A stretch of DNA of 64,000 bases from sequence record PV029745.1. The stretch is one strand, 5' to 3'. Numbering within the stretch: the first letter of the stretch is position 1; every line of letters starts with the position of its first letter. This document shows, in pieces, positions 1 to 63,746 of this stretch. A program made the translations under genes and the position numbers. The notes under the pieces are model-generated. The model saw only the letters and a program-made list of their open reading frames with translations, did no database searches and was not told the DNA's origin.

Positions 1-787
1 GGATAAGGAAGTTACCAACCCAATACCGAAGCTGCTGGATGAATCCCCACTTCTCGCCACCCATTCCGAGTTCGTAGTTCCGCGAACAAACGCCAGTACG
101 AATGCCTTTGTCATCGACACAGAATACGGTCATGGAGCTACCATCCAGCTTATAGGTAACTTCCATGTCATCACCGTCTTCTTTCAGGTTATAAAACGCA
201 ACGGTCTTATTCTGAATGCGGTCTTGATCGGACTTAGTTAGCATCTCAGGCCACGGTTTCAGAGCGCCACCCAGATTACCAATCAGCTTGGCACCAAGCT
301 TAACGATCCACGGAGCGTTACGTGCTGCATGAGCCTTCGATACCATCGGAGGAGCAGACTCGTACTTAAGGATACCCAGCTTCAGGGTCAGGTTAGTATC
401 AACGGGTTCATCTTTGAACTCATCGGGAATCGGAACCAGTAGTCCTTGAGAGAGCTCTTTACGAAGCTTGATAGTTTTCAAACGATGATAGTTTTTACCG
501 TCTACACGCCGATTGTCGGACCGACGGCTCTCAAGAAAACCGAAGAGCTTAACGTTATCCAGAGGAAGAAGAGAATCAATCTCGCAGTAAATAGCGCGAT
601 CACCTTTCTTATATTCGCCCATCTTTACACAAAGTTGCCAACCACCAACAATAGCCAATTCCAGAGCATCGGCATTAGGGTGTTTCACAACATCATCGAT
701 CTCAACAATGCGTGCAAGCTTACGAGTTTCTTCTACTACACCAAAACCTTCGCGGATCGGTTTCAATTCATCCATTTCAATCGTCAT
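1..787 (-). CDS. ATP-dependent RNA ligase, DRB0094/Rnl5 family (3' end runs off the window; absent from the ORF track)
   Basis: Manual translation from ATG at 787: MTIEMDELK...RKLARIVEIDDVVKHPNADALELAIVGGWQLCVKMGEYKKGDRAIYCEIDSLLP (N-terminal OB-like module typical of the family), KSDQDRIQN, motif I EVTYKLDGSS, VCSRNYEL; open to position 1. Confidence 0.82.
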   Translation of the reverse strand, partial: MTIEMDELKPIREGFGVVEETRKLARIVEIDDVVKHPNADALELAIVGGWQLCVKMGEYKKGDRAIYCEIDSLLPLDNVKLFGFLESRRSDNRRVDGKNYHRLKTIKLRKELSQGLLVPIPDEFKDEPVDTNLTLKLGILKYESAPPMVSKAHAARNAPWIVKLGAKLIGNLGGALKPWPEMLTKSDQDRIQNKTVAFYNLKEDGDDMEVTYKLDGSSMTVFCVDDKGIRTGVCSRNYELGMGGEKWGFIQQLRYWVGNFLI

Positions 788-788
788 T

Positions 789-995
789 TTATTTACCTTT
801 ATCAGTGATGGTTGTGCGAACGTCATTACGGAACCGCCGCACTATTTCGAGTATTTCTTTTTGATCTACATAACGAATGTCTGTCAGTTCAATTTCACGA
901 CAAGCCAATGAAATTTCAGCTTCAATCTGATCTGACAACGTTCGACGTAAACCATCTATCGTTACTTTACCCGGTGGCGGCGGCGCTGCGATCAT
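789..995 (-). CDS. hypothetical protein
   Basis: 68-aa ORF; ATGA overlap with the upstream gene and abuts the ligase start. Confidence 0.55.
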   Translation of the reverse strand: MIAAPPPPGKVTIDGLRRTLSDQIEAEISLACREIELTDIRYVDQKEILEIVRRFRNDVRTTITDKGK

Positions 996-1390
996 GTATT
1001 CACACCCCAGTTATAATCATAGAAGGTTTCAACGAAAGACTTACCAGGTAGTTCTTGTACGACCTGCTCTGTGCTATTTACCAAGGTTACAGCTTGCTCA
1101 AATGGGACAGGATGCCCACTTACCGGCGAGATGATCTTGTAACCATTCTCGCGTAGGTGATCAACGAAGTTCACCATACCAGTTTCAAGACCGACATTAT
1201 AAATATCGTTCTCCTGGTTGGTAGTGATTTCATAAGTCTTTCCAGCAGGGATATCGACAATGGGAGTACGGTCGTCACTGGTACGTGCTACGTCGCCCAT
1301 GGTACGACTTACAGTCCAGCAGAACTCATTGAGAACTGGGTTCGATTCTTGCCATTCTTTCTTTTCATCTAAACGGTCTTTATTCGACAT
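992..1390 (-). CDS. hypothetical protein (start revised to MSNKDRL)
   Basis: GAGG RBS before ATG at 1390; the longer track start overlaps a terminator and promoter motif. Confidence 0.6.
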   Translation of the reverse strand: MSNKDRLDEKKEWQESNPVLNEFCWTVSRTMGDVARTSDDRTPIVDIPAGKTYEITTNQENDIYNVGLETGMVNFVDHLRENGYKIISPVSGHPVPFEQAVTLVNSTEQVVQELPGKSFVETFYDYNWGVNT

Positions 1391-1419
1391 TGCAGTTACC
1401 TCGTTGTGGATACAAAAGA

Positions 1420-1445
1420 GTAATATAGATTTGAAATCTTTTTTA
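1420..1445 (-). promoter_or_regulatory. phiKZ-type early (virion RNAP) promoter motif
   Basis: Minus strand AAAAAAGATTTCAAATCTATATTAC; contains TATATTAC, the published phiKZ early promoter core. Confidence 0.6.
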
Positions 1446-1454
1446 TGACATAAA

Positions 1455-1472
1455 GGGGAGCCGAAGCTCCCC
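1455..1472 (-). terminator. intrinsic terminator with UUCG loop
   Basis: GGGGAGC-TTCG-GCTCCCC-TTTA on the minus strand, right after the Nampt-like stop. Confidence 0.75.
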
Positions 1473-1479
1473 ATGTCTA

Positions 1480-3246
1480 TTACAGAGAGGTCGCAATCCG
1501 TTCCCGGATTTTTGCCATCGTGTCATTCTTGTAGAATTCACCATTCTTAAAGAATAGCTTCAATTCACCGGATTCTGTTTCCAGAGTCGCCCAAGACATG
1601 TCGGCTTCTTGTTCAAGAACGAAGTTACCTTCTTCATCTTTAATTACACGAAGGAAACCTTTTGCAGACTTCTTACTAGATGCAGCTTTTGGATCTTTAT
1701 ACAGCTCTACGAATTCCTCTTCGATCTGAACAGCAGTGGCTTTAACGGCCATACCGAACGTATCGCGAGTGTTGTACTGATAGGTGTAGCTACCAATACC
1801 GAGAACGACGTTACTAGAGGCGTAGCCTTTACGTTCCAAGCGAGACATGATCTGCTCGGTACGATCTACAGTAATCGAATCACCATAGATCAGGCCAACA
1901 TATTCGTTCAGGCATTTGAAGCCTTTACCGTTAACAGTACCGCCAAAGGAATCCCACAGGACTTCAATCGCACCACGTACTTCAACTTCCGGGATAGTCT
2001 TTTCAGACAGGAAATCGGAGAGCGACGAAGCAATGTGATTGATCTCGTAGTATTCGCCTGCGATACGTACAACTTCGTAGCCACTGAACTCAATGGACCC
2101 CAGTTCACCGATGTGCTTCTCGAAATCAGCGCGATCTGCAAACTCAGTCGGGTAAGCCATGTAGCCAGTAATAACTTTAACCGGATCACCGGAGTCAGGA
2201 CGAACAACAACCCTGGCAAGGCCAAGTTCATTCTTCAGACGACTTTCGATTTCTGCACGGATGCTCGGGAGAACATCAGAGATAACACCCCAGAAGTCGA
2301 AGGAATCACAGACCAGCGAGATGATGCCTTCCGGAACTTTCTGAAGAATGATCTCCAGAATGTAGTCACGTTCAGCTTCCAGTCGCAGTTTGTCATGCAG
2401 TTCCGGAGTGATCACAGTACCTTCCTCTTTGAGGAAGTTGATCTTCATTTGCAAACGGTACAGGATGTTGGTAGTGGCTACAGCATGTTCGGTTGCAGTA
2501 ACCGAAGCACCCAACAGTTCAGTATCGCTATTAGCACCGTAATACATCTCAGCGTAATCAAGTGCCGGGATGGTATCAGTACCAGCGAAGCTAGTCAGGT
2601 GAGCCGAGCCAGAACGCATTGCATCTTCAGGGCCACTCATACCACGGAAGCTGAAATCATGTGCTTGGAACTTAACGTGCTCACGGTTATCGCAAGTACG
2701 GTCAGCATAATGGTTCAATACACGTTGGTATTCAGCAGCGATGGTTGCGTTGCAAATCATTTTCCAGTTGTACGAACTAACGATGGTTTCCAGATAGTTC
2801 ACCAGCCAGTAATGATCATCGTCATCCAGACTGTTGTAAACTACGAAAGTTGGAACACCAATGTTAACACGTTCACCTTCATCAATAGCCAGTACAGTCA
2901 GAGGCAGGTAACCCAGTTCATGTAGTTTGTACAGACACTCGTGTTTGATAACGCCTTTACCGCACATGTTGTCGAAACGACGTGCAGCGCGTTTAACAGC
3001 GATTTCACGAGGCAGATTGAAGAAGGTGCGATCCCACAGTTCTACCAGTTCGTGCCAAGTACCTTGCAACCCGAAGTTAACGACTTTGTTATCGTAGAAC
3101 GCAGAGCAAGACTTCGACCGCAGGAACTGCTTAGCAGAGCGCGGGGTGAAGTTAGCATATTTACGTTCAGTACCTTTCGGGTACAGAGCACCATGACCGG
3201 GTTTGTAGCAGTCAGTAGCAGTTGCAGCATAGAGAGCATTAGACAT
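1480..3246 (-). CDS. nicotinamide phosphoribosyltransferase-family protein (probable NARP1 Namat)
   Basis: TDCYKPGH, HDFSFRG, GTDTIPA, ATEHAV, SLVCDSFDFW, VVRPDSGDP, GLIYGDSIT, LGIGSY, RDTFGMAVKAT, KKSAKG; GAGGA RBS before ATG 3246. Confidence 0.9.
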   Translation of the reverse strand: MSNALYAATATDCYKPGHGALYPKGTERKYANFTPRSAKQFLRSKSCSAFYDNKVVNFGLQGTWHELVELWDRTFFNLPREIAVKRAARRFDNMCGKGVIKHECLYKLHELGYLPLTVLAIDEGERVNIGVPTFVVYNSLDDDDHYWLVNYLETIVSSYNWKMICNATIAAEYQRVLNHYADRTCDNREHVKFQAHDFSFRGMSGPEDAMRSGSAHLTSFAGTDTIPALDYAEMYYGANSDTELLGASVTATEHAVATTNILYRLQMKINFLKEEGTVITPELHDKLRLEAERDYILEIILQKVPEGIISLVCDSFDFWGVISDVLPSIRAEIESRLKNELGLARVVVRPDSGDPVKVITGYMAYPTEFADRADFEKHIGELGSIEFSGYEVVRIAGEYYEINHIASSLSDFLSEKTIPEVEVRGAIEVLWDSFGGTVNGKGFKCLNEYVGLIYGDSITVDRTEQIMSRLERKGYASSNVVLGIGSYTYQYNTRDTFGMAVKATAVQIEEEFVELYKDPKAASSKKSAKGFLRVIKDEEGNFVLEQEADMSWATLETESGELKLFFKNGEFYKNDTMAKIRERIATSL

Positions 3247-3262
3247 ATTTTTGATCCTCGGA

Positions 3263-4150
3263 TTAGAAAACAGAATGGGAGAAGAATTTCGGGTCACGTA
3301 CACCATCATGCCGATAATCATTTACGGCGTTAGGATGATAGGTGTTAGTGGTCTGGATATAGTCGTAGTATTCGTTCAGCTCGTCGAAACCCTTGGAGAA
3401 AATACCATGGGTTACAAACAGACCCAGTTGATCTACGATGCACTGTTCGTGGATAACCTTAGCAAGTTCAATGAACGTGCGGCCACCATCACAGATGTCA
3501 TCGATAACCAACAGCTTTGCTAACCGAGGAACATCATGGGCATTCAACAAAGACGTATGGGTGATCTTACCAGTCGACAGTTCACGGTTCTTGCAAGCGT
3601 AGAGTACGCCAGCAGCGCCAATCTCTTTTGCAATGGCTTCGATCTTTTTACGTGCACCTTCATCAGGTGCAACCAACCACCATTCTTGTGGAGTTTCCAG
3701 AAGTTGTCCTTCTACACATACCCAGCTCTTGATAATATCTGCTTGGGTAATCTCGCGGCAATTGTTGATGAGTGGCAGCGACACATTACTGTGCGGATCG
3801 TACAGGCATACAGACGTAGCGTCCAATGCATTGATCAAACCAGTCATCACACTAATCGACAGAGGTTCACCTTCATCGCAAACACGATCTTGTCGTGCGT
3901 ACGGCAGATAACCAATAACCAAGTGTATTTCAGGACGAATACGCTGGCGACGAATAGCGTCGAATACCAGGAACAGTTCCATGATATCGTCACTATTACG
4001 AAGCCAAGCATTGATTATGAATCGTTCGCCTTTCTTTCTGAGATCTTTCAGAGGGATCTTGATACCGATCTCACCGCCAGGGAATTTAAAGGGTTGACAA
4101 TCGTAGTGATCTGCCAAGCCGTTACCGTGAAGCTGAGTAATTCGAATCAT
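3263..4150 (-). CDS. ribose-phosphate pyrophosphokinase-family protein (probable NARP1 Adps)
   Basis: FPGGE, YLPYARQDRVCDEGEP, DPHS, VAPDEGA, K.R, IDDICDGGRTF, LFVTHGIFS; directly upstream of the Nampt-like gene. Confidence 0.88.
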   Translation of the reverse strand: MIRITQLHGNGLADHYDCQPFKFPGGEIGIKIPLKDLRKKGERFIINAWLRNSDDIMELFLVFDAIRRQRIRPEIHLVIGYLPYARQDRVCDEGEPLSISVMTGLINALDATSVCLYDPHSNVSLPLINNCREITQADIIKSWVCVEGQLLETPQEWWLVAPDEGARKKIEAIAKEIGAAGVLYACKNRELSTGKITHTSLLNAHDVPRLAKLLVIDDICDGGRTFIELAKVIHEQCIVDQLGLFVTHGIFSKGFDELNEYYDYIQTTNTYHPNAVNDYRHDGVRDPKFFSHSVF

Positions 4151-4198
4151 TTATTTTTCCTTTAGGGAAGAAGTTGGGGACCGAAGTCCCCGTTCGGG

Positions 4199-5452
4199 TT
4201 AGCCCTTGACGCAAACAATCTGACGCAGGGTGTGGACGATCTCAATGAGGTCATCCTGAGCAGCCATTACGTCTTCAATGTTCTTATAAGCCTTTGGAGT
4301 CTCGTCGATCACGTCAATGTCTTTCCGGCATTCTACACCGGCAGTATCACGAGCATGATCAGCAAGAGTAAAGGTCTTAGCGGCTTGGGTTCGGGACATG
4401 ACACGTCCTGCTCCGTGCGAACACGAACAGAAGGACTCGCGGTTCCCTTTACCTTTCACGATGAAGCTCTTCGCGCCCATCGATCCAGGAATAACGCCCA
4501 GCATACCCTCATCTGCACGCACTGCGCCTTTACGAGTTACGGATACTTTCGCACCGAAGTGGTTCTCGAAGGAGACGTAGTTATGGTGACATTGCACAGC
4601 TGATAAGCTGGTATTGATTGGTCGACCCATGTAATCTGCAACTGCCTCGATAGTGGCGCGCATCATGATCGTACGGTTGAGCGTGGCATAACGCTGAGCC
4701 CAATGTACAGCTTCGATGTAGTCGCTGTAGTACTTGGTACCTTCCGGTAGATAAGCGAGGTCCTGATCAGGCAGGTTGATGTGGTAGAGCCGCATCTCCT
4801 CTTTTGCTTTCTCAATGAAGTACCGACCGATTGCGTTACCGATCCCACGCGAACCCGAATGGAGCATGATCCAAACTCGATCTTGTTCATCCAGACAGAT
4901 CTCTACGAAGTGGTTACCAGTGCCGAGGGTACCAGCATGGTTGAATGCACGGTTAGCAGCCTTACCCAGTTTCGGGTGTTTAGCCACGATGAGCTTCAGT
5001 TCCTCTTCAAGCTTCTTAACCTGAGCTTGGAGCTCCGGTTCGAGTTTCTTGTAAACGAGGTTGAAGTCACTCCATGCACCACGGTCATTCGGGCCACCAT
5101 TGTCAGTACGACCATGGGGGATACGGGATTCGATTTTATAACGAAGATGTTGCAGACCATGAGTCATGTCGTTAGCTGTCAGATCAGTAAGCTGGCATGC
5201 AATCCCGCACCCAATATCGACCCCTACCGCAGACGGAATGATTGCACCCCGCGTAGCGATTACGGAACCGATGGTTGCACCGGTACCAAGGTGGACATCA
5301 GGCATTACAGCCAAATGCTTGTAAATGAACGGGAGTCCCGCGATGTTCTTCAGCTGACGTTTTGCATCAGCTTCAACAGGGACGCCTTTAACCCAAGCTT
5401 TAATTGGGAATTCATTCTGTTCGTTCAGCATAACGTATTTTTGAGTAGTCAT
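4199..5452 (-). CDS. rtcB: RtcB RNA ligase (2',3'-cyclic phosphate/5'-OH)
   Basis: MPDVHLG, VGVDIGCG, GTLGTGNHFVEI, HSGSRG, HHNY, RKGA, IPGSMG, SCSHGAGR, IDETPKAYKNI. Confidence 0.95.
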   Translation of the reverse strand: MTTQKYVMLNEQNEFPIKAWVKGVPVEADAKRQLKNIAGLPFIYKHLAVMPDVHLGTGATIGSVIATRGAIIPSAVGVDIGCGIACQLTDLTANDMTHGLQHLRYKIESRIPHGRTDNGGPNDRGAWSDFNLVYKKLEPELQAQVKKLEEELKLIVAKHPKLGKAANRAFNHAGTLGTGNHFVEICLDEQDRVWIMLHSGSRGIGNAIGRYFIEKAKEEMRLYHINLPDQDLAYLPEGTKYYSDYIEAVHWAQRYATLNRTIMMRATIEAVADYMGRPINTSLSAVQCHHNYVSFENHFGAKVSVTRKGAVRADEGMLGVIPGSMGAKSFIVKGKGNRESFCSCSHGAGRVMSRTQAAKTFTLADHARDTAGVECRKDIDVIDETPKAYKNIEDVMAAQDDLIEIVHTLRQIVCVKG

Positions 5453-5591
5453 TGTAGACGCTCCGAGAGTTTTAAGGTTTAGGAATTCAACGATTTAACG
5501 TTGTGCCAAGGTCGGGATCGCAGAATTCCAAGGATAGGTAGAGTAATGTCATGCCTATCCGTATTAGATAAGACTTTTGAGTAAATTGTCA

Positions 5592-6173
5592 TCAGTCCGA
5601 TTCAACGGCCATGGATAACTCTTTATGTTTCCTTCGTCTTTCAATATCAGCAAACCATGGTCTTACACTTAACCATATTGCAGGCCAACTGAGAATAGCC
5701 GCTACAGCCATCCACACTGCACTGAGTAGCACCCATGCGTCGTTACCATCGTCAACATCTCGTGGAGCTATGTCGAGTTGATAGTCAGTTCCAACGGGGA
5801 CATGGTGATAAGTGTAATCACCTAGCTTAGTTTCGTATACGAAGGGGACACCTTTCATCTTCCCTTCCCAACGACCCATTAGCTCTGTGTAGATCCCATG
5901 TTTGTATTTGTGGGTCTCTTCCCATTTCCAGGTCAATACAACCTGGGTCTTACGTTTGGTTACGTAGTCAGAGAAGAATGAGTTGTAGACTGCACCACCC
6001 ATAAATGCTAAGCAGATTAGGTAGAGCACCACACAACGCAGTTTAACCCACTTGGAGATTGGTACATACGGCTCTTGTTTCATAGTCATCGTACAGCCGA
6101 TTGCGTTTGCATAACCCAAGGGATTCCTTGATGCCATTGCATTTATTGCGGCTGCCTCCAGAGTTATACTCAT
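5592..6173 (-). CDS. hypothetical membrane protein
   Basis: 193-aa ORF with two hydrophobic segments; coupled to the upstream stop. Confidence 0.65.
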   Translation of the reverse strand: MSITLEAAAINAMASRNPLGYANAIGCTMTMKQEPYVPISKWVKLRCVVLYLICLAFMGGAVYNSFFSDYVTKRKTQVVLTWKWEETHKYKHGIYTELMGRWEGKMKGVPFVYETKLGDYTYHHVPVGTDYQLDIAPRDVDDGNDAWVLLSAVWMAVAAILSWPAIWLSVRPWFADIERRRKHKELSMAVESD

Positions 6174-6997
6174 TTAGGATTCTCATGGATAAGCTGGAAC
6201 GTGTCGAACTTGTATTGATCAACGAAGTGCCACGCGAGTTCACTCAGCTTAAAGATATCCGGACGTTCGTATTTACCGAAGTCGGGTTTCTCTTTAGCCA
6301 AATGGAAATCGATGAAACGGTCCAATACAGGGCAACGATCGATCAAGTCTTGTTCAGTGGAACCTATCTTACAGTTGACCAGTTCCTGAATACGTTTGTA
6401 CAAGGTGGGATCAGACAGAATCGGTAGGAGTTCATGGAATACCATCGGTGGATGTTCACGACTAGTCTCAACCCACAATGCTGCTAACAGTGGACGGAGA
6501 GCATAGAAGTATTTCTTCATGCGGACTTTCTCATCCGACAGCCAACGCATCTTGGTTTGCTTGGCCATGGAGATATAGTGCATGAAGCTCGATTCGGGAA
6601 TGAAGTGCTTGATAGCGTAATCACGAATCAGTTTGTAATCCCATTCGTTCTTACGGTAAACGATCGGGGAGTTCAACCACTCCAACAGAGTCGGGTTAGA
6701 CTTGTAAGCCAGTTGAAGTGTCTTGGTTATACTCCAACCAGCCAGATCGAGTTCCTTGGAAACCATCTCTTCGATGGTGTCACGACCTTCGTTATCAACC
6801 CGGACATAATGACTCGGATGGTTAACGTAGATGAAGCGAACATCGTAGTCACTATTAGTAGAAGCGAAACCCCAACCACGACTACCGGACTCACAGGCGT
6901 AAATGATCTTTACACCATACTTCTGTTCGATACGAGTTAACTCGGCGTCTATAACTGCATGCATCTCATCACTAACAGGGTGACGTGGATCCATCAT
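6170..6997 (-). CDS. Pol-beta-superfamily nucleotidyltransferase (RlaP/YcgL-like)
   Basis: YACESGSRGWGFASTNSDYDVRFIY (GS...DxD), LDLAGW, KSNPTLLEWLNSPIVY, KKYFYALRPLLA. Confidence 0.85.
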   Translation of the reverse strand: MMDPRHPVSDEMHAVIDAELTRIEQKYGVKIIYACESGSRGWGFASTNSDYDVRFIYVNHPSHYVRVDNEGRDTIEEMVSKELDLAGWSITKTLQLAYKSNPTLLEWLNSPIVYRKNEWDYKLIRDYAIKHFIPESSFMHYISMAKQTKMRWLSDEKVRMKKYFYALRPLLAALWVETSREHPPMVFHELLPILSDPTLYKRIQELVNCKIGSTEQDLIDRCPVLDRFIDFHLAKEKPDFGKYERPDIFKLSELAWHFVDQYKFDTFQLIHENPK

Positions 6998-7492
6998 TCA
7001 CCTACCTTTTCAAGTTTGAGTTTCTCTTCTTTACCCGTGTCCAAATACATGAACATCGAATTTCCCAGTAGGTTGTAATACATCCAACCTTCCTTAACCA
7101 CTTGATCGCCATACGTCAGAGGAATGTTCAATTCGTAAATGGCGTCATAAGGGATGATTACAGGATCTTTGTCAGGCTTGTTGAGGACGAGTGCATCGTC
7201 AGTAAGCTCAAGCCATTGCTTACGACTGATGACCCCAAGACCGATACTGAATTCGCTACCTGGGTCTTTCCCATTGAAGATACCACAGCGAACAGCAGGA
7301 TCAACTCGATCACCAGCAATACCGATTTTAACCGATACTGAATTCGCTACCTGGGTCTTTCCCATTGAAGATACCACAGCGAACAGCAGGATCAACTCGA
7401 TCACCAGCAATACCGATTTTAAGAGGGTCAGGGTCTACGCCCATCAATTCAACAACCAGTTCCAGTTGACGCTTGAGTTCAATCTTGTTCAC
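6994..7492 (-). pseudogene. 135-aa hypothetical gene frameshifted by a 91-bp tandem duplication
   Basis: GTG start 7492 with GAAGGA RBS overlaps the upstream TGA; removing one repeat copy gives 408 nt (136 codons) joining track ORFs 7328..7540 and 6994..7410. Confidence 0.75.
7240..7421. repeat. perfect 91-bp tandem direct duplication
   Basis: 7240-7330 is identical to 7331-7421 (accgatactgaattc...caataccgatttta). Confidence 0.95.
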
Positions 7493-8109
7493 AGTGTAAA
7501 TTCCTTCGTGTTGTATTGACGTGCAGAGTCGGTCCACCATGTAGGTGTCTGTGCGTAGTAGTATTCACCAAAGATACAAGTGGCTAAGGTTTTATCCAAA
7601 GCTTCCTGATAAGACATCTCGCCATCTTTAGTAGCGAAGTGAACCATGTTGTTGAAGCAGGTAATGATGTCAGCGTTTTCTTTTGTGGAGAAAACAACGG
7701 TACCTTTGGCTCCCACTTCGGAATGGATCATCGAGCTCCACGGACGAACACCACGATCAGTGACCAGATAGATATCTTGTACAGCCGATATGGAGAAGAA
7801 CGTACGAAGAAGGTTACCGTAATCGGGTAGGTCTTGCTCGAACAGAATATCGAGGATCTTACAGACCTTATCGATCTTCTTCATTTTCTCGGTGTAACGC
7901 GCACCACCATCATTCTCAGTGCAACCGATATTGAAGATGATACTGTAAATGGATTCCACAAGCTTACAGCATTTGTAGACGTACGGAGTTCCCTTTACTT
8001 TAGGAGTCCATACGAAAAGATTGCTCTTTCCTGGATTAGGTTGCTTGAACTGATGGATGCGGTACGGAATACCTTTTTCAAACAGCATGAAGTCCATTAT
8101 TTTCTCCAA
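7489..8109 (-). CDS. hypothetical protein (paralog of 20198..20758)
   Basis: 206-aa ORF; shares IY[LI][VL]TDRG and F..ENA.I motifs. Confidence 0.65.
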   Translation of the reverse strand: MEKIMDFMLFEKGIPYRIHQFKQPNPGKSNLFVWTPKVKGTPYVYKCCKLVESIYSIIFNIGCTENDGGARYTEKMKKIDKVCKILDILFEQDLPDYGNLLRTFFSISAVQDIYLVTDRGVRPWSSMIHSEVGAKGTVVFSTKENADIITCFNNMVHFATKDGEMSYQEALDKTLATCIFGEYYYAQTPTWWTDSARQYNTKEFTL

Positions 8110-8118
8110 AGGAAATAA

Positions 8119-8138
8119 AGCCTCCCCGAAGGGAGGCT
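8119..8138 (-). terminator. intrinsic terminator AGCCTCCCCGAAGGGAGGCT
   Basis: Identical 20-mer at 43691-43710 and 46799-46818, reverse-complemented at 37388-37407; variants near 13821, 27001, 63237. Confidence 0.8.
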
Positions 8139-8144
8139 TTTATG

Positions 8145-9575
8145 TCAGACAGCTACTTTCCCAGCGATGTGTGGATGGAACTGGTAATCCAGAATCTCGT
8201 AATCTTCCCGAGTGATATCAAGGAAAGGTTTACCTTTGGCCTCAGGCTTGAAGCGGATGGTAGGAGTAGGATAAGTATTGCGGGAACGTTGCAGAGTAAC
8301 CTGTTCCTCATGGTTACTGTAGATGTGACAGTCACCACCAGTCCAGATGAACTCTTCTGCTACCATGTTAAACTGGTTCGCCAACTGATGAGTCATCAGC
8401 GAATAGAACATGATGTTAAAGGGCACGCCCAAAAATTCGTCCGCCGATCTTTGATAGAGTTGACAACTGATAGCTCGTTTCGGAGCACCATGTTGATCCA
8501 ACCATTCTACCACTGCTTCATCGGTAGCCTTTTCATAACCACGACAGATACGCAGAAGTGCTTTAACCTGCTCAGCACCACCGAATGGAGGTTGACCACG
8601 AGTAGTCTCACCACTAATCTGATCATGGTAAGCATCAGCTTCGAAATGCGTTTGGTCTAGAGCTTGCACTCGTTCATCTACGGTAAGTTCACGGGTCCAG
8701 AACTGAATAAATGCATGGCATGGCGGGAGTGCCTGATCTTCGACCAAACGTGGATCCCAGGCACAGATAATCAGTCGACGACTATCTGGATTGTTTTCCA
8801 GTTGGTAAAGCAGTTCTTGAACCTGATCCACACGCCGGCGAATAACACACTCATCTTTCGTGTAATCAACACCAGGTACGTCAACTACGAACTTAAAGCC
8901 GCGTTTCTCGTAATTAGCCCAGTCTACTTTAGGAACGATACGAACATCGTCGATATCACGCCAGGTTTTACCATAGACCGGACCAAGATCACCACCAACC
9001 AAACGGAAGGCAGCCAACAGACCATCGTTGTCTTTAATCACGATCTTCGCATCGCCAATGACAATACGATATACGCGTAGAGCCATGCCATAGTAGTCGA
9101 ATGCATCGGGACCAGGACCGAAACGACTTACATCAGCCCAGGCTTTCAGGTTGATCAACAGTAGTGCCGATTTGTCCTGTTCAGGATCAATCCACTTCCA
9201 ATCGACATCACCGATCTCATTGCTGAAATGCATCTCAAACGGAATGTTCTTGAACTTCTTCTGAACAGCTGTAGTCAGCCAATCATCAGAAACCTTTTCG
9301 AATACTTCAGTACCCGGCTTAACCCACTCGTTCCAGATGGTGACGTTCTTGCTCAGGAGATACTCAAGGCGAGTGTCACCAGACTTCATCCAGTTGAGTT
9401 CTTCTTCAACCGACGGAAGATGAATCTTCTTGGTGGTCACTACAGGGAGGTTACCGTTACGAAGATCATAGCGGAACTGTCTACCGAACAAAGAGGTAGT
9501 ACCCGTACCAGTACGGTCACCTTTAAATACACCGTACTTCTGGGTATCTTCAAGTAGTTGTAGATACTGATGCAT
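8145..9575 (-). CDS. thyA: thymidylate synthase with large insertions
   Basis: DRTGTGTTSLFG, VTTKKIH, IWNEW, GDLGPVYG, SRRLIICAW, ALPPCH, CQLYQRSADEFLGVPFN, GDCHIYSNH. Confidence 0.95.
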   Translation of the reverse strand: MHQYLQLLEDTQKYGVFKGDRTGTGTTSLFGRQFRYDLRNGNLPVVTTKKIHLPSVEEELNWMKSGDTRLEYLLSKNVTIWNEWVKPGTEVFEKVSDDWLTTAVQKKFKNIPFEMHFSNEIGDVDWKWIDPEQDKSALLLINLKAWADVSRFGPGPDAFDYYGMALRVYRIVIGDAKIVIKDNDGLLAAFRLVGGDLGPVYGKTWRDIDDVRIVPKVDWANYEKRGFKFVVDVPGVDYTKDECVIRRRVDQVQELLYQLENNPDSRRLIICAWDPRLVEDQALPPCHAFIQFWTRELTVDERVQALDQTHFEADAYHDQISGETTRGQPPFGGAEQVKALLRICRGYEKATDEAVVEWLDQHGAPKRAISCQLYQRSADEFLGVPFNIMFYSLMTHQLANQFNMVAEEFIWTGGDCHIYSNHEEQVTLQRSRNTYPTPTIRFKPEAKGKPFLDITREDYEILDYQFHPHIAGKVAV

Positions 9576-9919
9576 TAAACACCTCCATCGTTAGAAGCTA
9601 CGGTCAACTTGCTAGGAAGACCTAGAGTTTTATGGGTAGTTTCTTCAATAGCTTTCAGAAGAGCTTCCATATTACCAGTAGGATGACCCAGATGTGGATC
9701 ATTTTGATAACTGATTTCGAAGGTCATGGGGACATCCACGACATGACTGAAATCGACATCACCAACATTCACCGGATAACCCAGACTGATACCTTTAATA
9801 ACCTTACGGTCATGACCGATAGCAATGAAGTCCATGGTAGCACGGTTATGGACGACTGCCCAAGCACCAGTGGATTGCAGTAGATTACGACTTACGATTT
9901 CAGAGATTGTCATCTTCAA
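9575..9919 (-). CDS. hypothetical protein
   Basis: 114-aa ORF coupled (TAATG) to thyA. Confidence 0.6.
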   Translation of the reverse strand: MKMTISEIVSRNLLQSTGAWAVVHNRATMDFIAIGHDRKVIKGISLGYPVNVGDVDFSHVVDVPMTFEISYQNDPHLGHPTGNMEALLKAIEETTHKTLGLPSKLTVASNDGGV

Positions 9920-10304
9920 CTACCTTTAGGAACTTTGCAGTTACTTGGAGAATGATACCAGATTCGGCACGGGCGTCATCACCATCAGATTCATAATGGA
10001 TACTACCGCCATCAACCCACACGCGAGCACCGTTCGGAACAAGTTCATCAGTTGCCATGTATTGAACTTCAGTGTAATCGCCTGAACTATTGCTAGTGCG
10101 AGAGATACCCATCAGGTGATCGCAACTGGGTACGATGATACCCATGTTACCTGGGTTAATGTAAGCAGTGACTTCAGTCAACCCGATGAAGTAGTGACCA
10201 CGAGACGGCGGTACAGTCAGTTTATAATTGTTGAACGGAGTCAACAAAAATTTGACTTCATTAGTAGTTGGAAGAGGTAAAGCGTTTACAGTTTGATTGT
10301 TCAT
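9900..10304 (-). CDS. hypothetical protein
   Basis: 134-aa ORF in an overlapping gene chain. Confidence 0.6.
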   Translation of the reverse strand: MNNQTVNALPLPTTNEVKFLLTPFNNYKLTVPPSRGHYFIGLTEVTAYINPGNMGIIVPSCDHLMGISRTSNSSGDYTEVQYMATDELVPNGARVWVDGGSIHYESDGDDARAESGIILQVTAKFLKVVEDDNL

Positions 10305-10609
10305 TTTTCACCTTTGAATTTCACCGAGTGAGAACCGAATATGAATTCATAATTCTCAGTGTGTTTACGTTCGGTAAGAAGACGAATACTGTTATTAAAT
10401 TCGTCATATTTGACAACAGCTACGACTAGGTTATTACGTTTATCGTAATACTGATAAGTGTTATCATCAGTGTTGATTTCACCCAGTTCGAAAACTTCAT
10501 CATTTTGCTTAATGGCAATCAGTTTACGGGGAGTTGGAATAGTACCGAAGTCGACTTTGTATTTAACCAGCGAATCTTCAGTGGTGCTTTCAGCAACGTA
10601 ACTAATCAT
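10301..10609 (-). CDS. hypothetical protein
   Basis: 102 aa; ATGA overlaps at both ends. Confidence 0.6.
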   Translation of the reverse strand: MISYVAESTTEDSLVKYKVDFGTIPTPRKLIAIKQNDEVFELGEINTDDNTYQYYDKRNNLVVAVVKYDEFNNSIRLLTERKHTENYEFIFGSHSVKFKGEK

Positions 10610-10872
10610 TTCTTTTCCTCAGGGTCGTAGGATTTCGGGATACCAGCTACTTCGTAGAAATGATCCCAATATGGACTTTCGTCACGGCGGTGCATATTGA
10701 AATTCTGATAATCCGTACAGATGACTTTAAACCCATCTGCAACTGATTCCACGACCGGCATATTACCAGTGTGACTGTTGTCGATAACGAAGTGGATGTT
10801 ATTATTGTGTTTGTACTTCAGATCGAATTCTCGTTTGCGTTCAACAGGGGTATAGCTAATTAAGGATGCCAT
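10606..10872 (-). CDS. hypothetical protein
   Basis: 88 aa; coupled to neighbours. Confidence 0.6.
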   Translation of the reverse strand: MASLISYTPVERKREFDLKYKHNNNIHFVIDNSHTGNMPVVESVADGFKVICTDYQNFNMHRRDESPYWDHFYEVAGIPKSYDPEEKK

Positions 10873-10874
10873 GT

Positions 10875-11630
10875 TTATTCCTCAAGACGAAGTTTCCAGA
10901 ACCCGCCCTCTTCTTTCCAGGTCTCACGAATAGCGTTGTCAGTACGTTGACCGTCCTTAAACAGCTTCTCTACATTGGACGGGTAAGTATAGTTGTACAA
11001 CGCAATTGCAAATTGGGTTACAGCTACTCGGGCTGGAATAACACCAGTGCCGGTTCCCATCAGGCAACCGAGGACACGGAAAGAATCTTTCTTTTGTTTA
11101 CCGTACCATTCACACCCAGCAATGCCATCTAGGGCTGCCTTAGAGGCTAGATACGGAACATCCGAACCTTTGGGTAGCCTGCGAGGAACACGCATCGTAG
11201 GGGTGTACAGGAGTGTTGCAGTGATACCATTAAGTTTGGTGAATTGAACGCAAGCACAGGAACCTACGTTTAACTCACCACTGTGGAAACGATTGATATC
11301 GTGAACCACATTTTTCTGCATGTTAACAAAACGGGCAGCTAGGGCACCATCATATCCACCGGTCATATGCCCGTATGAGTTACCCGCGGTCATGTAGTAG
11401 TCAAACTCGTCCGCGTGGTCTCCGAGTGCATCAAGCGTACCATGAAACACTTTAAGGTCATGTCCAAGTTGCTTGACAAAATCAGAGATAGCTACGAGTT
11501 CTTGAAACTCTTCATAACTGGGGGTGCAAAATACGAACTCCAGTGGTTTGCGTCCGATATCTACAGTACCAAGAGAAAGACCATCAGCGATCTCTTTATG
11601 GATACGGGACATTACGAATGGAGATGTCAT
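10875..11630 (-). CDS. macro-domain (ADP-ribose binding/hydrolase) protein
   Basis: TAGNSYGHMTGGYDGALA, GELNVGS, YTPTMRVP, LMGTGTGVIP match macro-domain signatures. Confidence 0.82.
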   Translation of the reverse strand: MTSPFVMSRIHKEIADGLSLGTVDIGRKPLEFVFCTPSYEEFQELVAISDFVKQLGHDLKVFHGTLDALGDHADEFDYYMTAGNSYGHMTGGYDGALAARFVNMQKNVVHDINRFHSGELNVGSCACVQFTKLNGITATLLYTPTMRVPRRLPKGSDVPYLASKAALDGIAGCEWYGKQKKDSFRVLGCLMGTGTGVIPARVAVTQFAIALYNYTYPSNVEKLFKDGQRTDNAIRETWKEEGGFWKLRLEE

Positions 11631-11714
11631 TTCTATACCTCACGACAAAAAGAAAATAGATGGAGCTCCCGAAGGAGCCCCGGTGCGCTGACCTTTACGA
11701 TCAACTACATAATA

Positions 11715-11963
11715 TTACATTGAAACGCATGACATTTCGCGACGAATGTTTTTATTATCGAATTCGTATTCCAGAACCACACCGGCCTGAGTACGAACGA
11801 CTTTAACTTTAGTTCCATTCGCTGCTGTTGTATCTTGAATAGCACCTACAGCTTTCCAACAGGAGTCAATGCTTTCCATCTTAGTGGTGGTTTCAGAAGA
11901 ACCACCAGCATAAATACCAGAGACAATAGTAGTGCTAATGAGAATAGCTCCTGCAAGAGACAT
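11715..11963 (-). CDS. small exported/membrane hypothetical protein
   Basis: Hydrophobic N-terminus, two Cys. Confidence 0.5.
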   Translation of the reverse strand: MSLAGAILISTTIVSGIYAGGSSETTTKMESIDSCWKAVGAIQDTTAANGTKVKVVRTQAGVVLEYEFDNKNIRREMSCVSM

Positions 11964-12760
11964 TACTTTTTACCTCCTTTAATTACGGTAAGCTTCGGCT
12001 TGCCTTTATAACGGGATGGAGCAACATTAACTGGTGCACCGGGAAGATCGCCAAAGTCGAGAAGAGGTTTATCAACAACCTTCAGTTCGGGGGATTTCTT
12101 GATCGGACTAACCTCCACACCAGGTTGATTAGCAATGAAATCTTCAGCTTCTTCCAGTTCTTTTAGTTTCCGAGTATTTGCACGTTCGGAAACATAGGAC
12201 AAGAACTGAGAGAACAAATCGTCATCGTTGCTAACCATGTGCTGTACATGTTCAAGCGCTTTCTCTACGGGAACATCGGTGATTCCCTTCTCTGCCAGCC
12301 ATGCCATTACATCTACGATATCAATGCTGACGGTACCAGGCGCACCATTAGCAATATCGCGGAAGGGATGAACATACGTCGGATTCTCGGCATCAAACAA
12401 AATCCGATCGACATTAGGGAACGGAGAGAACACACTTGCATTCTCAGAGATCTGCACATTCACACCAATGAAAGAATGCCATGGCAGATGCAAACGAGTA
12501 GGCATACCCGAGAAAGCAATTTCACCATAGAAGCAATCACCCGAATAATCAATGTGGCGGCACGCATTTACCGACAGATTGAGAACGATGGTACCATTAG
12601 TGGCATTGAAATCTTTCGAACGCATCATGATTTTACGAAGCGGTTCTGCCAGATAACCTACATCGATAACACAGTCGAAGCGATACATGTTGTTATCAGC
12701 ATTCCAGTTGTAGTATGCTTCAACCAGTTTTTGATTCAATGCGGAAGTGAGTTTGATCAT
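11963..12760 (-). CDS. SspB-like ClpXP adaptor protein
   Basis: AYYNWNADN..., GTIVLNLSVNAC, IAFSGMPTRLHLPWHSFIGV resemble the SspB core; terminal KPKLTVIK resembles the ClpX-binding RPALRVVK tail. Confidence 0.72.
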   Translation of the reverse strand: MIKLTSALNQKLVEAYYNWNADNNMYRFDCVIDVGYLAEPLRKIMMRSKDFNATNGTIVLNLSVNACRHIDYSGDCFYGEIAFSGMPTRLHLPWHSFIGVNVQISENASVFSPFPNVDRILFDAENPTYVHPFRDIANGAPGTVSIDIVDVMAWLAEKGITDVPVEKALEHVQHMVSNDDDLFSQFLSYVSERANTRKLKELEEAEDFIANQPGVEVSPIKKSPELKVVDKPLLDFGDLPGAPVNVAPSRYKGKPKLTVIKGGKK

Positions 12761-12774
12761 TTTGAGTCTCCAGA

Positions 12775-13206
12775 TTAAAGGAATCGTTCAGTGATAGAAG
12801 TGATCAGTTTCTTTTCTTTATTGAGAGAAGACATGTGATCACGGTATTTCTTGAAGTAACCTACATCTTCAGGACCATTTGCCATTTTGGGATTGGCCGT
12901 GAGTATGTGATGGATCTGGGTACCCGTATAGACACTAATGTTCCATGTCTTGGATTCCGAGATTATTTTCTTTACAGCTGCATTAGACTCATCGCTATCT
13001 TCAATGAGATAAGCATCGATGGATTGACTAACCGATCGGCTGAATTCATCGAGAGCACTAAGATCACCTTTGGGAAGGTTAGCATGTACTTCTTTGAGTT
13101 CTTTTAAAGTACGCGGTGCTACACCCGGAACCCAACGATTGGTAATAACATCACCATCAAGTTCATGACGTGGTTGCAGCTCATTGGGTTTCTGGAATGG
13201 ATACAT
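12775..13206 (-). CDS. hypothetical protein
   Basis: 143-aa ORF with GAGG RBS. Confidence 0.6.
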   Translation of the reverse strand: MYPFQKPNELQPRHELDGDVITNRWVPGVAPRTLKELKEVHANLPKGDLSALDEFSRSVSQSIDAYLIEDSDESNAAVKKIISESKTWNISVYTGTQIHHILTANPKMANGPEDVGYFKKYRDHMSSLNKEKKLITSITERFL

Positions 13207-13213
13207 GATTACC

Positions 13214-13729
13214 TCAACGGAACATGTTCTTTATGAAATTCCATGGCTTAAGATACCATGGAGTTGTCGACGCATAGACTACACCAGGTTCGTTCGAAAG
13301 TAAGTTTAGATTGCCATTGCCATCACAGATATAAATTTTCCCTTCACCAATAACAACATCGTCTTTTACTGGAGTTTCTCCATTAGAACGAATAGTAACA
13401 CCTCGTGAAGAACTTTTGTAGTAATCGTTGATAGCTTCCGCTTCAAGCTGTACGAAGACATTGTTCATGATCACACATATTTCTTTGTCCAGTTCTTCCA
13501 GTCGATGATCGAATGAATCCTCGTCACCACCACTTACAACGAAGACATCTGGAATGACAAATAGATCTTTGAATAAAATACCATCAATATGCAACCTGGG
13601 TCTACCTATTACATCACCAAAGAACAAAAATGCTCGGTGGCGACACAGTTGTAAATGTTCGCGATGCTGTTTTCTCAGTTCCTTATAGAACTTCCAATTA
13701 GTGAAAGATTCCGCAGATATAAAAGACAT
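13214..13729 (-). CDS. hypothetical protein (start revised to MSFISAE)
   Basis: GAGG RBS before 13729; the longer start overlaps a promoter motif. Confidence 0.6.
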   Translation of the reverse strand: MSFISAESFTNWKFYKELRKQHREHLQLCRHRAFLFFGDVIGRPRLHIDGILFKDLFVIPDVFVVSGGDEDSFDHRLEELDKEICVIMNNVFVQLEAEAINDYYKSSSRGVTIRSNGETPVKDDVVIGEGKIYICDGNGNLNLLSNEPGVVYASTTPWYLKPWNFIKNMFR

Positions 13730-13766: not shown

Positions 13767-13792
13767 ATGATGTAGATCTGAGATATTTTTTA
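13767..13792 (-). promoter_or_regulatory. early promoter motif variant
   Basis: Minus strand AAAAAATATCTCAGATCTACATCAT. Confidence 0.5.
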
Positions 13793-13851
13793 GCGTAAGT
13801 AAAATAAAAAACGACATATAGCCCTCCCCGAAGGGAGGGCCAAATGTACCA

Positions 13852-15763: not shown

Positions 15764-15829
15764 ATATCCTCAGATTGTAATAATCTACAGGATTGGTTAG
15801 GAAAATAAAAAAAGGCATAAAGCCTCCCC

Positions 15830-18162: not shown

Positions 18163-20758
<2,596 letters not shown>

Positions 20759-21406: not shown

Positions 21407-22051
21407 TTATACCCGAGGCAGAATAACCTTATCTGCCTGTTTCATGTATTTACCACCACGATCTGCATAGGAAGTTTCACAATCTTGATCGAGATCATGG
21501 AACACCAGTTGCAAAACACCTTCATGTGCATAGAACACGTTAGGGCGATTAGTAGTGTTCTGGAACTCGAACGTGATATGTCCTTCCCAACCTGGCTCGA
21601 TCGGAGTACACAGACAGTTCCAACCAGCTCGCGCGATGGTAGATTTACCAATACACATTGCGATTACATTCCGAGGCATTCGAACATACTCTTTCGAATG
21701 AGTCAGAAGGAAACCACCTGGGGGAACTACAACTTTATCACCGTAGACTGTATCAAACAGATCAGCGCTGATGTTCTTGTAATCCAGTACAGGGTGTTCA
21801 AGTTCTTTACCTGTTACCCAGGCTTTGAAACGTTGCCAAAGAGTGAACTTAGGTAGATGCTTGAATACTTTAAACTCAGTACCAGCTCGAAGATCATAAC
21901 CCCCAGAGGACAGACCATAGGAAGCGATACGCTTTCCATGACTATCTTCTTTCACTGACGAACCGTGAAATGGTTCTATCATTGGACCATGTGCACCGAC
22001 CATTGTGCCTTCGCAGTATTCACGAATTGTTTTATCAGAGAGAACTGTCAT
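21407..22051 (-). CDS. dcd: dCTP deaminase
   Basis: LSDKTI, SYGLSSGGYDLR, GKSTIARAG, PIEPGWEGHITFEFQN, EGVLQLVF, Y.GKYM.Q. Confidence 0.93.
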   Translation of the reverse strand: MTVLSDKTIREYCEGTMVGAHGPMIEPFHGSSVKEDSHGKRIASYGLSSGGYDLRAGTEFKVFKHLPKFTLWQRFKAWVTGKELEHPVLDYKNISADLFDTVYGDKVVVPPGGFLLTHSKEYVRMPRNVIAMCIGKSTIARAGWNCLCTPIEPGWEGHITFEFQNTTNRPNVFYAHEGVLQLVFHDLDQDCETSYADRGGKYMKQADKVILPRV

Positions 22052-26970: not shown

Positions 26971-27024
26971 TTGATTTTCCTTTTAATGAGAGATGGCATA
27001 AAGCTCCCCGAAGGGAGCAGTATG

Positions 27025-28645: not shown

Positions 28646-28670
28646 GTAATATAGATGTAAGATAATTTTT
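28646..28670 (-). promoter_or_regulatory. early promoter motif
   Basis: Minus strand AAAAATTATCTTACATCTATATTAC. Confidence 0.6.
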
Positions 28671-38540: not shown

Positions 38541-38616
38541 AGGGAGTGAACCTTTACGATAAGGAAGTCATAAGAATAAGGGACTACGCAAAATAAAAGG
38601 AGCCCGAAGGCTCCAG

Positions 38617-39105: not shown

Positions 39106-39210
39106 CTTCCCCTCCTGTAGGGGCTACGGTCTCTTCCACAACACGAAAATATATATCCTTATACTTTCATCAGATAAGGCATAAAGCCCGCCCTAAGGCG
39201 AGCTATGCGT

Positions 39211-40929: not shown

Positions 40930-40988
40930 TTGAAGTTTCCTCTTGGTAACATAAAGAGGCCCCCGAAGGAGCCTCCCGTGTTTACAAC

Positions 40989-43545: not shown

Positions 43546-43653
43546 TTTTTACTACCTTCAATTAAAGGAATTAACTTGTCATTCTCGCGAATGGATATTG
43601 TGTTAGCTGTTACATGGTAATGTCCTCAAGATGTTAATCTCTAGTGCATACCT

Positions 43654-43678
43654 GTGATATAGATTTGAAATATTTTTT
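43654..43678 (-). promoter_or_regulatory. early promoter motif
   Basis: Minus strand AAAAAATATTTCAAATCTATATCAC. Confidence 0.55.
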
Positions 43679-43715
43679 AATGGAACATAAAGCCTCCCCG
43701 AAGGGAGGCTTTATA

Positions 43716-46770: not shown

Positions 46771-46825
46771 TTTGATTTCCCTTCTTAGCGGAAAATAAAG
46801 CCTCCCCGAAGGGAGGCTCCATTGA

Positions 46826-63579: not shown

Positions 63580-63746
63580 AGGTTTCTATCCCATGTGAAG
63601 AAAGTCTGAGTTTAACCGAATCAGACGTATCGCAAACTGGGTGAGATGTTCGAGCATCTCCCCCAATTCACGTTTGTAATATAGTTCTCAATTAAGTTAG
63701 ATTAAGACGGCATATTGCCCTCCCTTTTGGGGAGGGCTTTATGTCG

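Follow-up and report, generated by a model that had tools for sequence, protein, structure and literature searches.

RNA-repair genes and the NARP1 module side by side in a rearranging region of the Pseudomonas jumbo phage phiHQ

Pseudomonas phage phiHQ (sequence record PV029745.1) carries, within 7 kb of its minus strand, eight genes that include those for two predicted RNA ligases of different types (RtcB and Rnl5), an RlaP-family nucleotidyltransferase, and the enzymes Adps and Namat of NARP1, a pathway that rebuilds nicotinamide adenine dinucleotide (NAD+). The genes lie at the start of the 64,000-nucleotide stretch analysed here (the window), whose initial 8 kb correspond at 100% identity to positions 62001–70000 of the record. 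A first-pass annotation had located and named them correctly and had read them as one composite counter-defence island. We consider it rather probable that the region is instead a lineage-specific side-by-side placement of three described repair modules, most likely acting independently, inside an old and rearranging nucleotide-metabolism block of Pseudomonas nucleus-forming phages.

The record files phiHQ under the nucleus-forming Chimalliviridae; phiHQ belongs to Pawinskivirus (PA1C-like), a genus name that for this group is taken from the record of phage PS119XW. The same 8 kb are 92–99% identical to those of six ~300-kb P. aeruginosa phages (HHBS36_1, PA1C, BRkr, phiLBG22, PS119XW and HPP-Temi), and the close relative PA1C encodes the nucleus-shell proteins ChmA and ChmB. 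Phages of this type shield their DNA, and RNA, tRNA supply and NAD+ stay exposed in the cytoplasm; the joint presence of RtcB, Rnl5, RlaP and NARP1 would show which of these exposed resources the phage invests in protecting.

According to the explanation that we favour, RtcB would directly re-seal breaks with a 2',3'-cyclic phosphate or 3'-phosphate and a 5'-OH, the kind of break that metal-independent anticodon nucleases and HEPN-type RNases leave. RlaP followed by Rnl5, the latter together with two small open reading frames (ORFs) upstream of it, would handle trimmed 3'-OH ends, provided that a 5'-phosphate is present. Adps would convert ADP-ribose and ATP to ADP-ribose pyrophosphate (ADPR-PP), from which Namat would make NAD+ with nicotinamide after cleavage by a host NADase. 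The presumed substrates, tRNA, mRNA and NAD+, would all be cytoplasmic and outside the phage nucleus. Since the phage has an NAD+-dependent DNA ligase of its own, loss of NAD+ would also hit it directly.

Predicted enzymes and their partner genes

All phiHQ features named below lie on the minus strand, and coordinates are those of the window. The RtcB protein (417 aa; 4199–5452) matches PF01139 along the full-length fold (E 1e-128, model positions 1–426 of 426) and solved RtcB structures with E values of 3e-35 to 1e-28, the metal-binding and HGAGR motifs being aligned. Its blocks D-I-G-C-G, GNHF, HSGSRG, HHN and SHGAGR are invariant in three phage RtcB proteins and align to the solved Thermus protein. 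Cysteine, histidine and aspartate residues bind the metal in this family, and the histidine of HGAGR is guanylylated. The protein is 65–71% identical to RtcB of other chimalliviruses and is predicted to join, dependent on GTP and Mn, ends bearing a 3'-phosphate or 2',3'-cyclic phosphate to 5'-OH ends. The RtcB gene of PS119XW (NC_070882.1 239559–241763; L171:5060–7264) forms a single ORF of 734 aa, the extra length being an in-frame insert of ~317 residues near the N-terminus. An intein was considered for this insert and rejected, as neither a Hint nor an endonuclease domain was detected in it.

The N-terminal 262 codons of Rnl5 lie in the window (1–787) and the gene runs off its edge; the full gene (451 aa; PV029745.1 61432–62787, L001:7432–8787) was read from the public record. 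An OB domain (PF21189, E 4e-25, residues 24–120) is followed from residue 208 by a nucleotidyltransferase domain (PF09414), an order that is the reverse of that in DNA ligases. Both domains align in this order with those of Naegleria NgrRnl (5COT), the closest solved structure (E 3e-46 for the full-length protein), and motif I (KLDGSS) aligns with the KxDG lysine motif of NgrRnl, relative to which the phage protein has an insert of ~77 residues. It matches the RNA ligases of PHROG 968 (E 1e-67) and is 75% identical to phiPA3 gp289 and 62% identical to the Psa21 ligase. The joining chemistries that the first-pass annotation had given for the two ligase types are indeed established for RtcB and, with NgrRnl and DraRnl, for Rnl5, and phiHQ Rnl5 is predicted to seal nicks with 3'-OH and 5'-phosphate ends.

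Directly upstream of Rnl5 lies a 68-aa ORF (789–995) and before it one of 132 aa (992–1390). The latter is a conserved upstream partner of Rnl5: it is 35% identical to phiPA3 gp288, which occupies the same position, and a large protein search with it returned the PA1C orthologue only. The 68-aa ORF had no family match; its weak phiPA3 homologue gp287 (25% identity, E 3e-4) also lies at the same position.

The NAD module was confirmed as NARP1. Namat (588 aa; 1480–3246) belongs to the NAPRTase family (PF04095, E 1e-33; PHROG 448, E 5e-175), and its closest solved structure is the SPbetaL1 Namat (9W5X/9W5W, E 2e-102 versus ~1e-44 for true NAMPT). In the alignment to 9W5X the aromatic residues of the clamp helix, on which selectivity for ADPR-PP depends, are kept, with tyrosines at F392 and Y396 in SPbetaL1 numbering (GIGSYTYQYN versus GIGSFTYQYN). 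Adps (295 aa; 3263–4150), separated from Namat by 16 nt, is PRPS-like (PF13793, E 8e-11; PHROG 619, E 6e-80), and its DDICD loop, invariant in relatives, corresponds to residues Asp212-Asp213-Ile214-Cys215-Asp216 described for Adps. The NARP1 tables of Osterman et al. list the PA1C Adps orthologue (98% identical) and, as 'Adps-associated', the Namat orthologues of PS119XW and PA1C. Judged by its genes, the module is thus the catalogued NARP1 in its basic form, and not NARP1-AP, since no Macro-domain phosphatase (Adpp) is attached: within the first 13.7 kb no ORF matched a Macro domain even with a cut-off of E 5, and tblastn with Macro proteins of other NARP1 loci was empty in 126 kb. An NMN (nicotinamide mononucleotide) adenylyltransferase, the indicator of NARP2, was found neither in the cluster nor among the window ORFs scanned. 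As shown for its homologues, phiHQ NARP1 is predicted to form ADPR-PP and to rebuild NAD+.

RlaP (275 aa; 6170–6997) matches PF10127 (E 1e-88, model positions 1–244 of 249) and PHROG 14344 (E 3e-115) and is 85% identical to phiKZ gp237. The Pol-beta motif G-S...D-x-D (ESGSR...SDYDVRF) is invariant in the four phage members compared (phiHQ, phiKZ gp237, Psa21 and BcepSauron); no solved RlaP structure was matched by sequence. In the published biochemistry of RlaP, a 3'-OH is extended by one or two nucleotides, with a preference for the break of a cleaved tRNA. What is described there is not the restoration of CCA ends that had been suggested for this protein in the first-pass annotation. As pointed out in published work, such a 3'-OH product suits 5'-phosphate ligases and not RtcB. 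Although RtcB is nearer (0.7 kb downstream on the same strand, as compared with 5.4 kb for Rnl5), it is therefore Rnl5 that would be the compatible partner in phiHQ.

RlaP is flanked by two genes of less defined nature. Upstream lies a homologue of phiKZ gp236 (6994–7492; PHROG 30953), a conserved partner of RlaP that is confined to phiKZ-like and Pawinskivirus phages; a large protein search with it returned only orthologues of close phages, and its AlphaFold model was unusable, with a predicted local distance difference test score (pLDDT) of 40. Downstream, with a start overlapping the RlaP stop codon, lies the gene for a predicted two-pass membrane protein (193 aa; 5592–6173) with two 19-residue hydrophobic stretches at residues ~43–66 and ~146–170 in the hydropathy profile. 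It had no family match and no homologue at the phiKZ, phiPA3 or Psa21 loci, and its counterpart in PS119XW is gp277. For these two proteins and the 132-aa and 68-aa ORFs, no relatives were detected beyond close phages.

Gene order in relatives and transcription signals

In transcription order, the phiHQ cluster comprises thymidylate synthase, a 202-aa protein, the gp236 homologue, RlaP, the membrane protein, RtcB, Adps, Namat, the 132-aa ORF, the 68-aa ORF and Rnl5. Different parts of this series recur in other chimalliviruses. Of the set, the phiKZ locus holds just thymidylate synthase, gp236 and gp237 (RlaP). That of phiPA3 consists of thymidylate synthase, fourteen small genes, gp287, gp288 and Rnl5, with no RtcB, RlaP or NARP1 gene annotated. 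In Psa21 and RVTF4, Adps–Namat is followed by one gene, thymidylate synthase, four or five small genes and Rnl5; RtcB lies 37–44 kb from NARP1 and Rnl5 in these Tepukeviruses (Psa21, D6 and RVTF4 loci), and RlaP of Psa21 is located ~55 kb from RtcB. Viktualia, a jumbo phage of P. syringae, has within 21 kb dCTP deaminase, a homologue of the 202-aa protein, NAD-dependent DNA ligase, RtcB, five small genes, Adps–Namat, thymidylate synthase and Rnl5. Based on these gene orders, a frame reaching from thymidylate synthase to Rnl5 is common to phiHQ, phiPA3, Psa21, RVTF4 and Viktualia. The cluster of phiHQ is thus best described as the form taken in Pawinskivirus by an old region subject to rearrangement and gene loss, anchored by thymidylate synthase and Rnl5. 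The RlaP pair is inherited from a phiKZ-like side and the Rnl5 trio from a phiPA3-like side; as the gp236–gp237 pair also follows thymidylate synthase in phiKZ, RlaP is present in the cluster by descent.

A recently acquired foreign island can be ruled out from the synteny with distant chimalliviruses and from the guanine-plus-cytosine (GC) content of the cluster (45–48%), which is not clearly distinct from the range in the window (39–48%). If gene order were random in a genome of roughly 398 genes, four such units would fall inside ten slots with a probability of ~3e-5. This null model is, however, unrealistic for a modular phage genome, for which conservation in relatives is the better test, and there the outcome is mixed. 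The linkage that the first-pass annotation had expected is lacking for RlaP and partly lacking for RtcB; it is seen for RtcB, NARP1 and Rnl5 in Viktualia-like phages and other lineages. Among the Pawinskivirus, phiKZ and Psa21 loci, proximity of RlaP to an RNA ligase is found in Pawinskivirus only.

Signals inferred from the sequence only suggest that the block is also not transcribed as one. At many minus-strand gene ends across the window there is a stereotyped GC hairpin; its loop is mostly UUCG, and TTTATG comes after it. Such terminator-like elements lie just past the Namat stop codon (1455–1472) and past thymidylate synthase (8117–8140), and further gaps that bear it are located at 13769–13851, 15764–15829, 26971–27024, 38541–38616, 39106–39210, 40930–40988, 43546–43715, 46771–46825 and 63580–63746. 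A near-identical core, GCCTCCCTTCGGGGAGGC, is common to several of these hairpins. They probably serve the transcription system of the phage itself, as terminators combined with promoter or processing signals. An AT-rich 15-mer (1423–1437), located past the Namat hairpin and ahead of the 132-aa ORF, repeats exactly at 43657–43671, again just downstream of a terminator-like hairpin and within ~25 nt of similarity; degenerate copies are found at 13770–13784 and 28649–28663. This repeat is a candidate promoter. A weaker GC hairpin (4176–4191), with a UUCG loop and no U-tract, lies in the 48 nt that separate RtcB from Adps and may act as an attenuator or in RNA stability. The terminator-like hairpin at 8117–8140, a strong one with a U-rich tail, separates thymidylate synthase from the 202-aa gene. 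Based on the hairpins and the promoter-like motif, the block probably comprises at least two transcription units, one, which may be subdivided, starting with the 202-aa gene and ending with Namat, and one with the 132-aa ORF, the 68-aa ORF and Rnl5. A scan for sigma-70 promoters (11 matches versus 18.5 in shuffled sequence) was uninformative because the phage has its own RNA polymerases.

RNA ligases near NARP1 in other viruses

Neighbourhoods with 10-kb flanks were sampled from 80 RtcB-centred and 80 Adps-centred viral contigs, and NARP1 loci were grouped into 65 lineages at below 80% Adps identity. Namat accompanied Adps at 78 of the 80 loci. The surroundings of RtcB were very variable, with Namat-like, Macro and Rnl5 genes among the commonest neighbours. 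An RNA ligase lay at most 10 kb from NARP1 in 21 of the 65 lineages (RtcB in 8, Rnl5 in 6, Rnl1-like in 7). Macro genes occurred around NARP1 in 9 of 65, in agreement with the published 15%, which supports the method. Thus NAD repair adjoins RNA repair in several lineages, as the first-pass annotation had seen it in phiHQ. Where the ligase near NARP1 is Rnl1-like, genes for an AAA_33 kinase and a metallophosphoesterase usually accompany it directly upstream of Adps. Four viral contigs of ~93 kb (L104, L113, L115 and L117) carry, around positions 6000–13500 of each locus, genes for an HD-domain protein, a metallophosphoesterase, an Rnl1-like ligase, an AAA_33 kinase, Adps, Namat and a Macro protein, an array that by its domains represents a full heal-and-seal RNA repair set joined to NARP1 with its phosphatase. 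In contig L129 (4717–12070), Adps and Namat are followed by eight small ORFs, RtcB and, immediately thereafter, an Rnl2-type ligase; judged by its gene content, this is a second and unrelated case in which NARP1 is accompanied by two ligases that differ in end chemistry.

The control set comprised 80 loci centred on a gene for ATP-dependent DNA ligase. An RNA ligase occurred at 8 of the 12 that hold NARP1 versus 5 of the 68 that do not (Fisher P 1.7e-5), or 8/12 versus 5/58 after dereplication (P 5e-5). Compared with the 68 control loci without NARP1, the 21 of 65 NARP1-centred lineages correspond to an odds ratio of 6 (P 3.5e-4), in a comparison whose lineages are not phylogenetically independent and whose control anchor was taken from NARP1 loci. 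Within the 10-kb flanks, distances between ligase and NARP1 were not clearly shorter than random (median test, P 0.2); sub-tests gave P 0.007 for all distances within 6 kb and P 0.03 for an excess of gaps below 500 bp, the overall test being weak. We read the co-location as real but moderate. Placement of both among the early accessory and nucleotide-metabolism genes could also account for it, and functional coupling is not proven by it.

The RNA-repair idea itself is not new. Iyer et al. (2021) had already described RtcB, ATP-dependent ligases and RlaP as RNA repair in jumbo phages, with different ligases for different end chemistries. In the searchable literature we found no paper that mentions both RtcB and NARP1, and a 2026 preprint surveying genes beside NARP1 reports the Macro phosphatase and no RNA ligase. 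Modestly new is therefore the recurrent proximity of RNA ligases to NARP1 across phage lineages; the parts themselves are known and catalogued. If upheld, the presence of an RNA ligase near NARP1 in about a third of the sampled viral lineages, versus ~7% of control loci, would aid the annotation of anti-defence regions and point to neighbours worth studying, and for Pseudomonas therapy phages it would help to predict which host defences are tolerated. A broader proposal, which we regard as doubtful, is that NAD+ reconstitution and RNA re-ligation form a recurrent, selected phage partnership in which RtcB, Rnl5, Rnl1 (with kinase and phosphoesterase) and Rnl2 were repeatedly recruited beside Adps–Namat. 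Were it true, the phiHQ cluster would be one case of a general cytoplasmic damage-repair cassette that is directed against RNA- and NAD+-destroying defences or shares ADP-ribose chemistry with tRNA splicing.

For phiHQ itself, the corresponding view is that RtcB, Adps and Namat, with Rnl5 nearby, constitute a selected, co-regulated and functionally coupled counter-defence cassette, the coupling being either joint expression against defences that cut RNA and burn NAD+ or the ADP-ribose chemistry just mentioned. The co-location statistics favour it. So does the fact that Pawinskivirus, L118 and contigs of 320 kb (L011, L014/L098) all have RtcB, Adps and Namat in this order on one strand; Viktualia has it too, and there five small genes separate RtcB from Adps. 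Likewise, RtcB is found less than 3 kb from NARP1 in L103, L129/L132, L134 and L142 despite RtcB identities among loci of 28–68% (L103 RtcB, only 30% identical, belongs to a different RtcB subfamily), the Rnl2-type ligase of L129 follows RtcB directly, and Adpp, the Macro phosphatase associated with NARP1, has the yeast tRNA-splicing enzyme Poa1p as a homologue. We nevertheless judge such a cassette unlikely. No shared substrate or intermediate is known for RtcB, which uses GTP and Mn, and NARP1; 44 of the 65 NARP1 lineages have no RNA ligase nearby; RtcB lies 22–44 kb from Adps in Tepukevirus and in Klebsiella and Serratia jumbo phages; and in phiHQ a hairpin intervenes between RtcB and Adps. 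The indistinct distances and the limits of the control comparison argue in the same direction. Somewhat less probable still is that the cluster has no counter-defence function at all and is part of a nucleotide and RNA metabolism block, with NARP1 supplying NAD+ to the phage DNA ligase, the RNA ligases mending tRNA and mRNA that takeover nucleases of the phage itself have damaged, and co-location resulting from shared timing and descent only. The neighbouring genes for thymidylate synthase, dCTP deaminase and NAD-dependent DNA ligase fit this picture, as do the synteny and GC content of the region and the most frequent flanks of NARP1 in other phages (DNA ligase, ribonucleotide reductase, exonuclease, dCMP deaminase and primase-helicase). 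However, LigA yields AMP and NMN from NAD+, and NARP1, which needs the NADase products ADP-ribose and nicotinamide, cannot recycle NMN; this argues against a purely housekeeping role. Moreover, published work shows that other phages, once they lose NARP1, specifically cease to escape NAD-depleting defences, and the patchy distribution of the genes among close relatives is accessory-like and not core-like.

A further question is whether RlaP partners an RNA ligase at all. Together with the gp236 homologue, it might act on a small molecule or on nucleic-acid ends of another kind, its nearness to RtcB being an accident of insertion beside the older gp236–RlaP pair. This would fit with phiKZ-like phages, which hold gp236 and RlaP without RtcB or Rnl5 at the locus; with Psa21, where RlaP (L172:2836–5783) begins at the stop codon of the DNA polymerase gene, far from any RNA ligase; and with the viral RtcB and NARP1 neighbourhoods, in none of which (0 of 160) RlaP was found even at E 1. 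That RtcB cannot use the RlaP product points the same way. Yet the family is defined by its association with RNA ligases, its members act in vitro on RNA and not on genomic DNA or protein, and according to Iyer et al. its distribution in jumbo phages mirrors that of RNA ligases. In BcepSauron RlaP lies three genes past an Rnl1 ligase, and phiHQ has the compatible Rnl5 5 kb downstream. We thus consider it very improbable that RlaP is no ligase partner.

Several observations weigh against the favoured explanation of three repair modules placed side by side. The activities of the Pawinskivirus enzymes are predicted from homologues, and Iyer et al. found RNA repair to be rarer in nucleus-forming jumbo phages. 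The phiKZ and Psa21 loci just described suggest that RlaP may have another role. In phiHQ, the gp236 homologue is frame-shifted once by a perfect tandem duplication with a unit that is not a multiple of three; the duplication is absent from PA1C and HHBS36_1, which are ~91–92 nt shorter across the stretch, and may either have arisen recently by mutation or be an error of the assembly. Finally, a tblastn search with weak probes, namely the kinase, phosphoesterase, Macro and Rnl1 proteins encoded at other NARP1 loci, gave no match in the 126 kb of the phage lineage that were covered (of 300 kb). With no polynucleotide kinase or phosphatase detected, Rnl5 could act only on breaks that already bear a 5'-phosphate.

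Neighbouring genes and comparison with known systems

Thymidylate synthase (476 aa; 8145–9575; PF00303, E 4e-81), the conserved upstream anchor of the variable slot, has a large insert that splits its Pfam match into two stretches. The thymidylate synthases phiKZ gp235 and phiPA3 gp274 resemble it in length, with 57% identity. The adjacent 202-aa protein (7489–8097) belongs to a small family specific to jumbo phages, with 12 distant homologues; a large protein search returned only close phage orthologues. Its gene is variable: PS119XW lacks it, with none separating thymidylate synthase from the gp236 homologue. Among the residues conserved in the protein are His15, Glu48, Tyr51 and Thr113. Its AlphaFold model is of good quality (pLDDT 88), and all fold matches were below threshold, among them an HslV/proteasome-like Ntn-hydrolase (E 0.04, template modelling score 0.36) and uncharacterised proteins of Psa21 and phiPA3. 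In other jumbo phages (L170, L011 and Viktualia) the family is encoded between dCTP deaminase and NAD-dependent DNA ligase, and in these three a second, shorter adenylation-domain gene precedes the DNA ligase gene.

In phiHQ the corresponding two genes lie 11–13 kb upstream of the cluster, the NAD+-dependent (LigA-type) DNA ligase at 18163–20295 (PF01653, E 2e-67; PF03120, E 3e-31; HhH and BRCT domains) and dCTP deaminase at 21407–22051. A 251-aa protein encoded at 10875–11630 is 45% identical to phiPA3 gp271; the Macro domain suggested for it by the phiPA3 record, in which gp271 is likened to the macro-H2A domain, was not confirmed by Pfam or by a sequence search of the PDB. No tRNA genes were found in the window.

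The NAD module resembles characterised NARP1 (Osterman et al. 2024; Namat structures 9W5X/9W5W; Adps structures of 2026) in the adjoining Adps–Namat genes and their order, the clamp aromatics and the DDICD loop. It differs in a Namat that is ~90 residues longer than the SPbetaL1 enzyme and has a longer clamp loop, and in having RtcB immediately upstream. Rnl5 shares with NgrRnl and Deinococcus DraRnl (DRB0094) the N-terminal OB domain followed by a nucleotidyltransferase domain with the KxDG motif. By contrast, the predicted phiHQ ligase has 451 residues versus 340, the ~77-residue insert being in the catalytic domain, and is preceded by two small conserved ORFs. In phage T4, Pnkp and Rnl1 counteract the anticodon nuclease PrrC, and the likeness lies in a phage re-joining host-cut tRNA so that translation goes on; in phiHQ, where the 126 kb searched held no kinase-phosphatase, RtcB would replace the heal-and-seal route.

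The closest parallel for RlaP is the RtcB-RlaP-RtcA operon of Pseudomonas (Carruthers, Fatma and Huang 2025), with which phiHQ shares the host genus and the placement of RlaP and RtcB on one strand, ~0.7 kb apart. In such bacterial operons and in the RNA-repair systems described by Burroughs and Aravind and by Iyer et al. (2021), nucleotides are likewise predicted to be restored prior to ligation. The phage cluster differs from the Pseudomonas operon in being without the RtcA cyclase and the RtcR regulator and in having a membrane-protein gene and a 139-nt gap between RlaP and RtcB. In addition, RlaP of phiHQ is paired with a small phage-only protein, and Rnl5, predicted to be able to use its 3'-OH product, is encoded in the same cluster.

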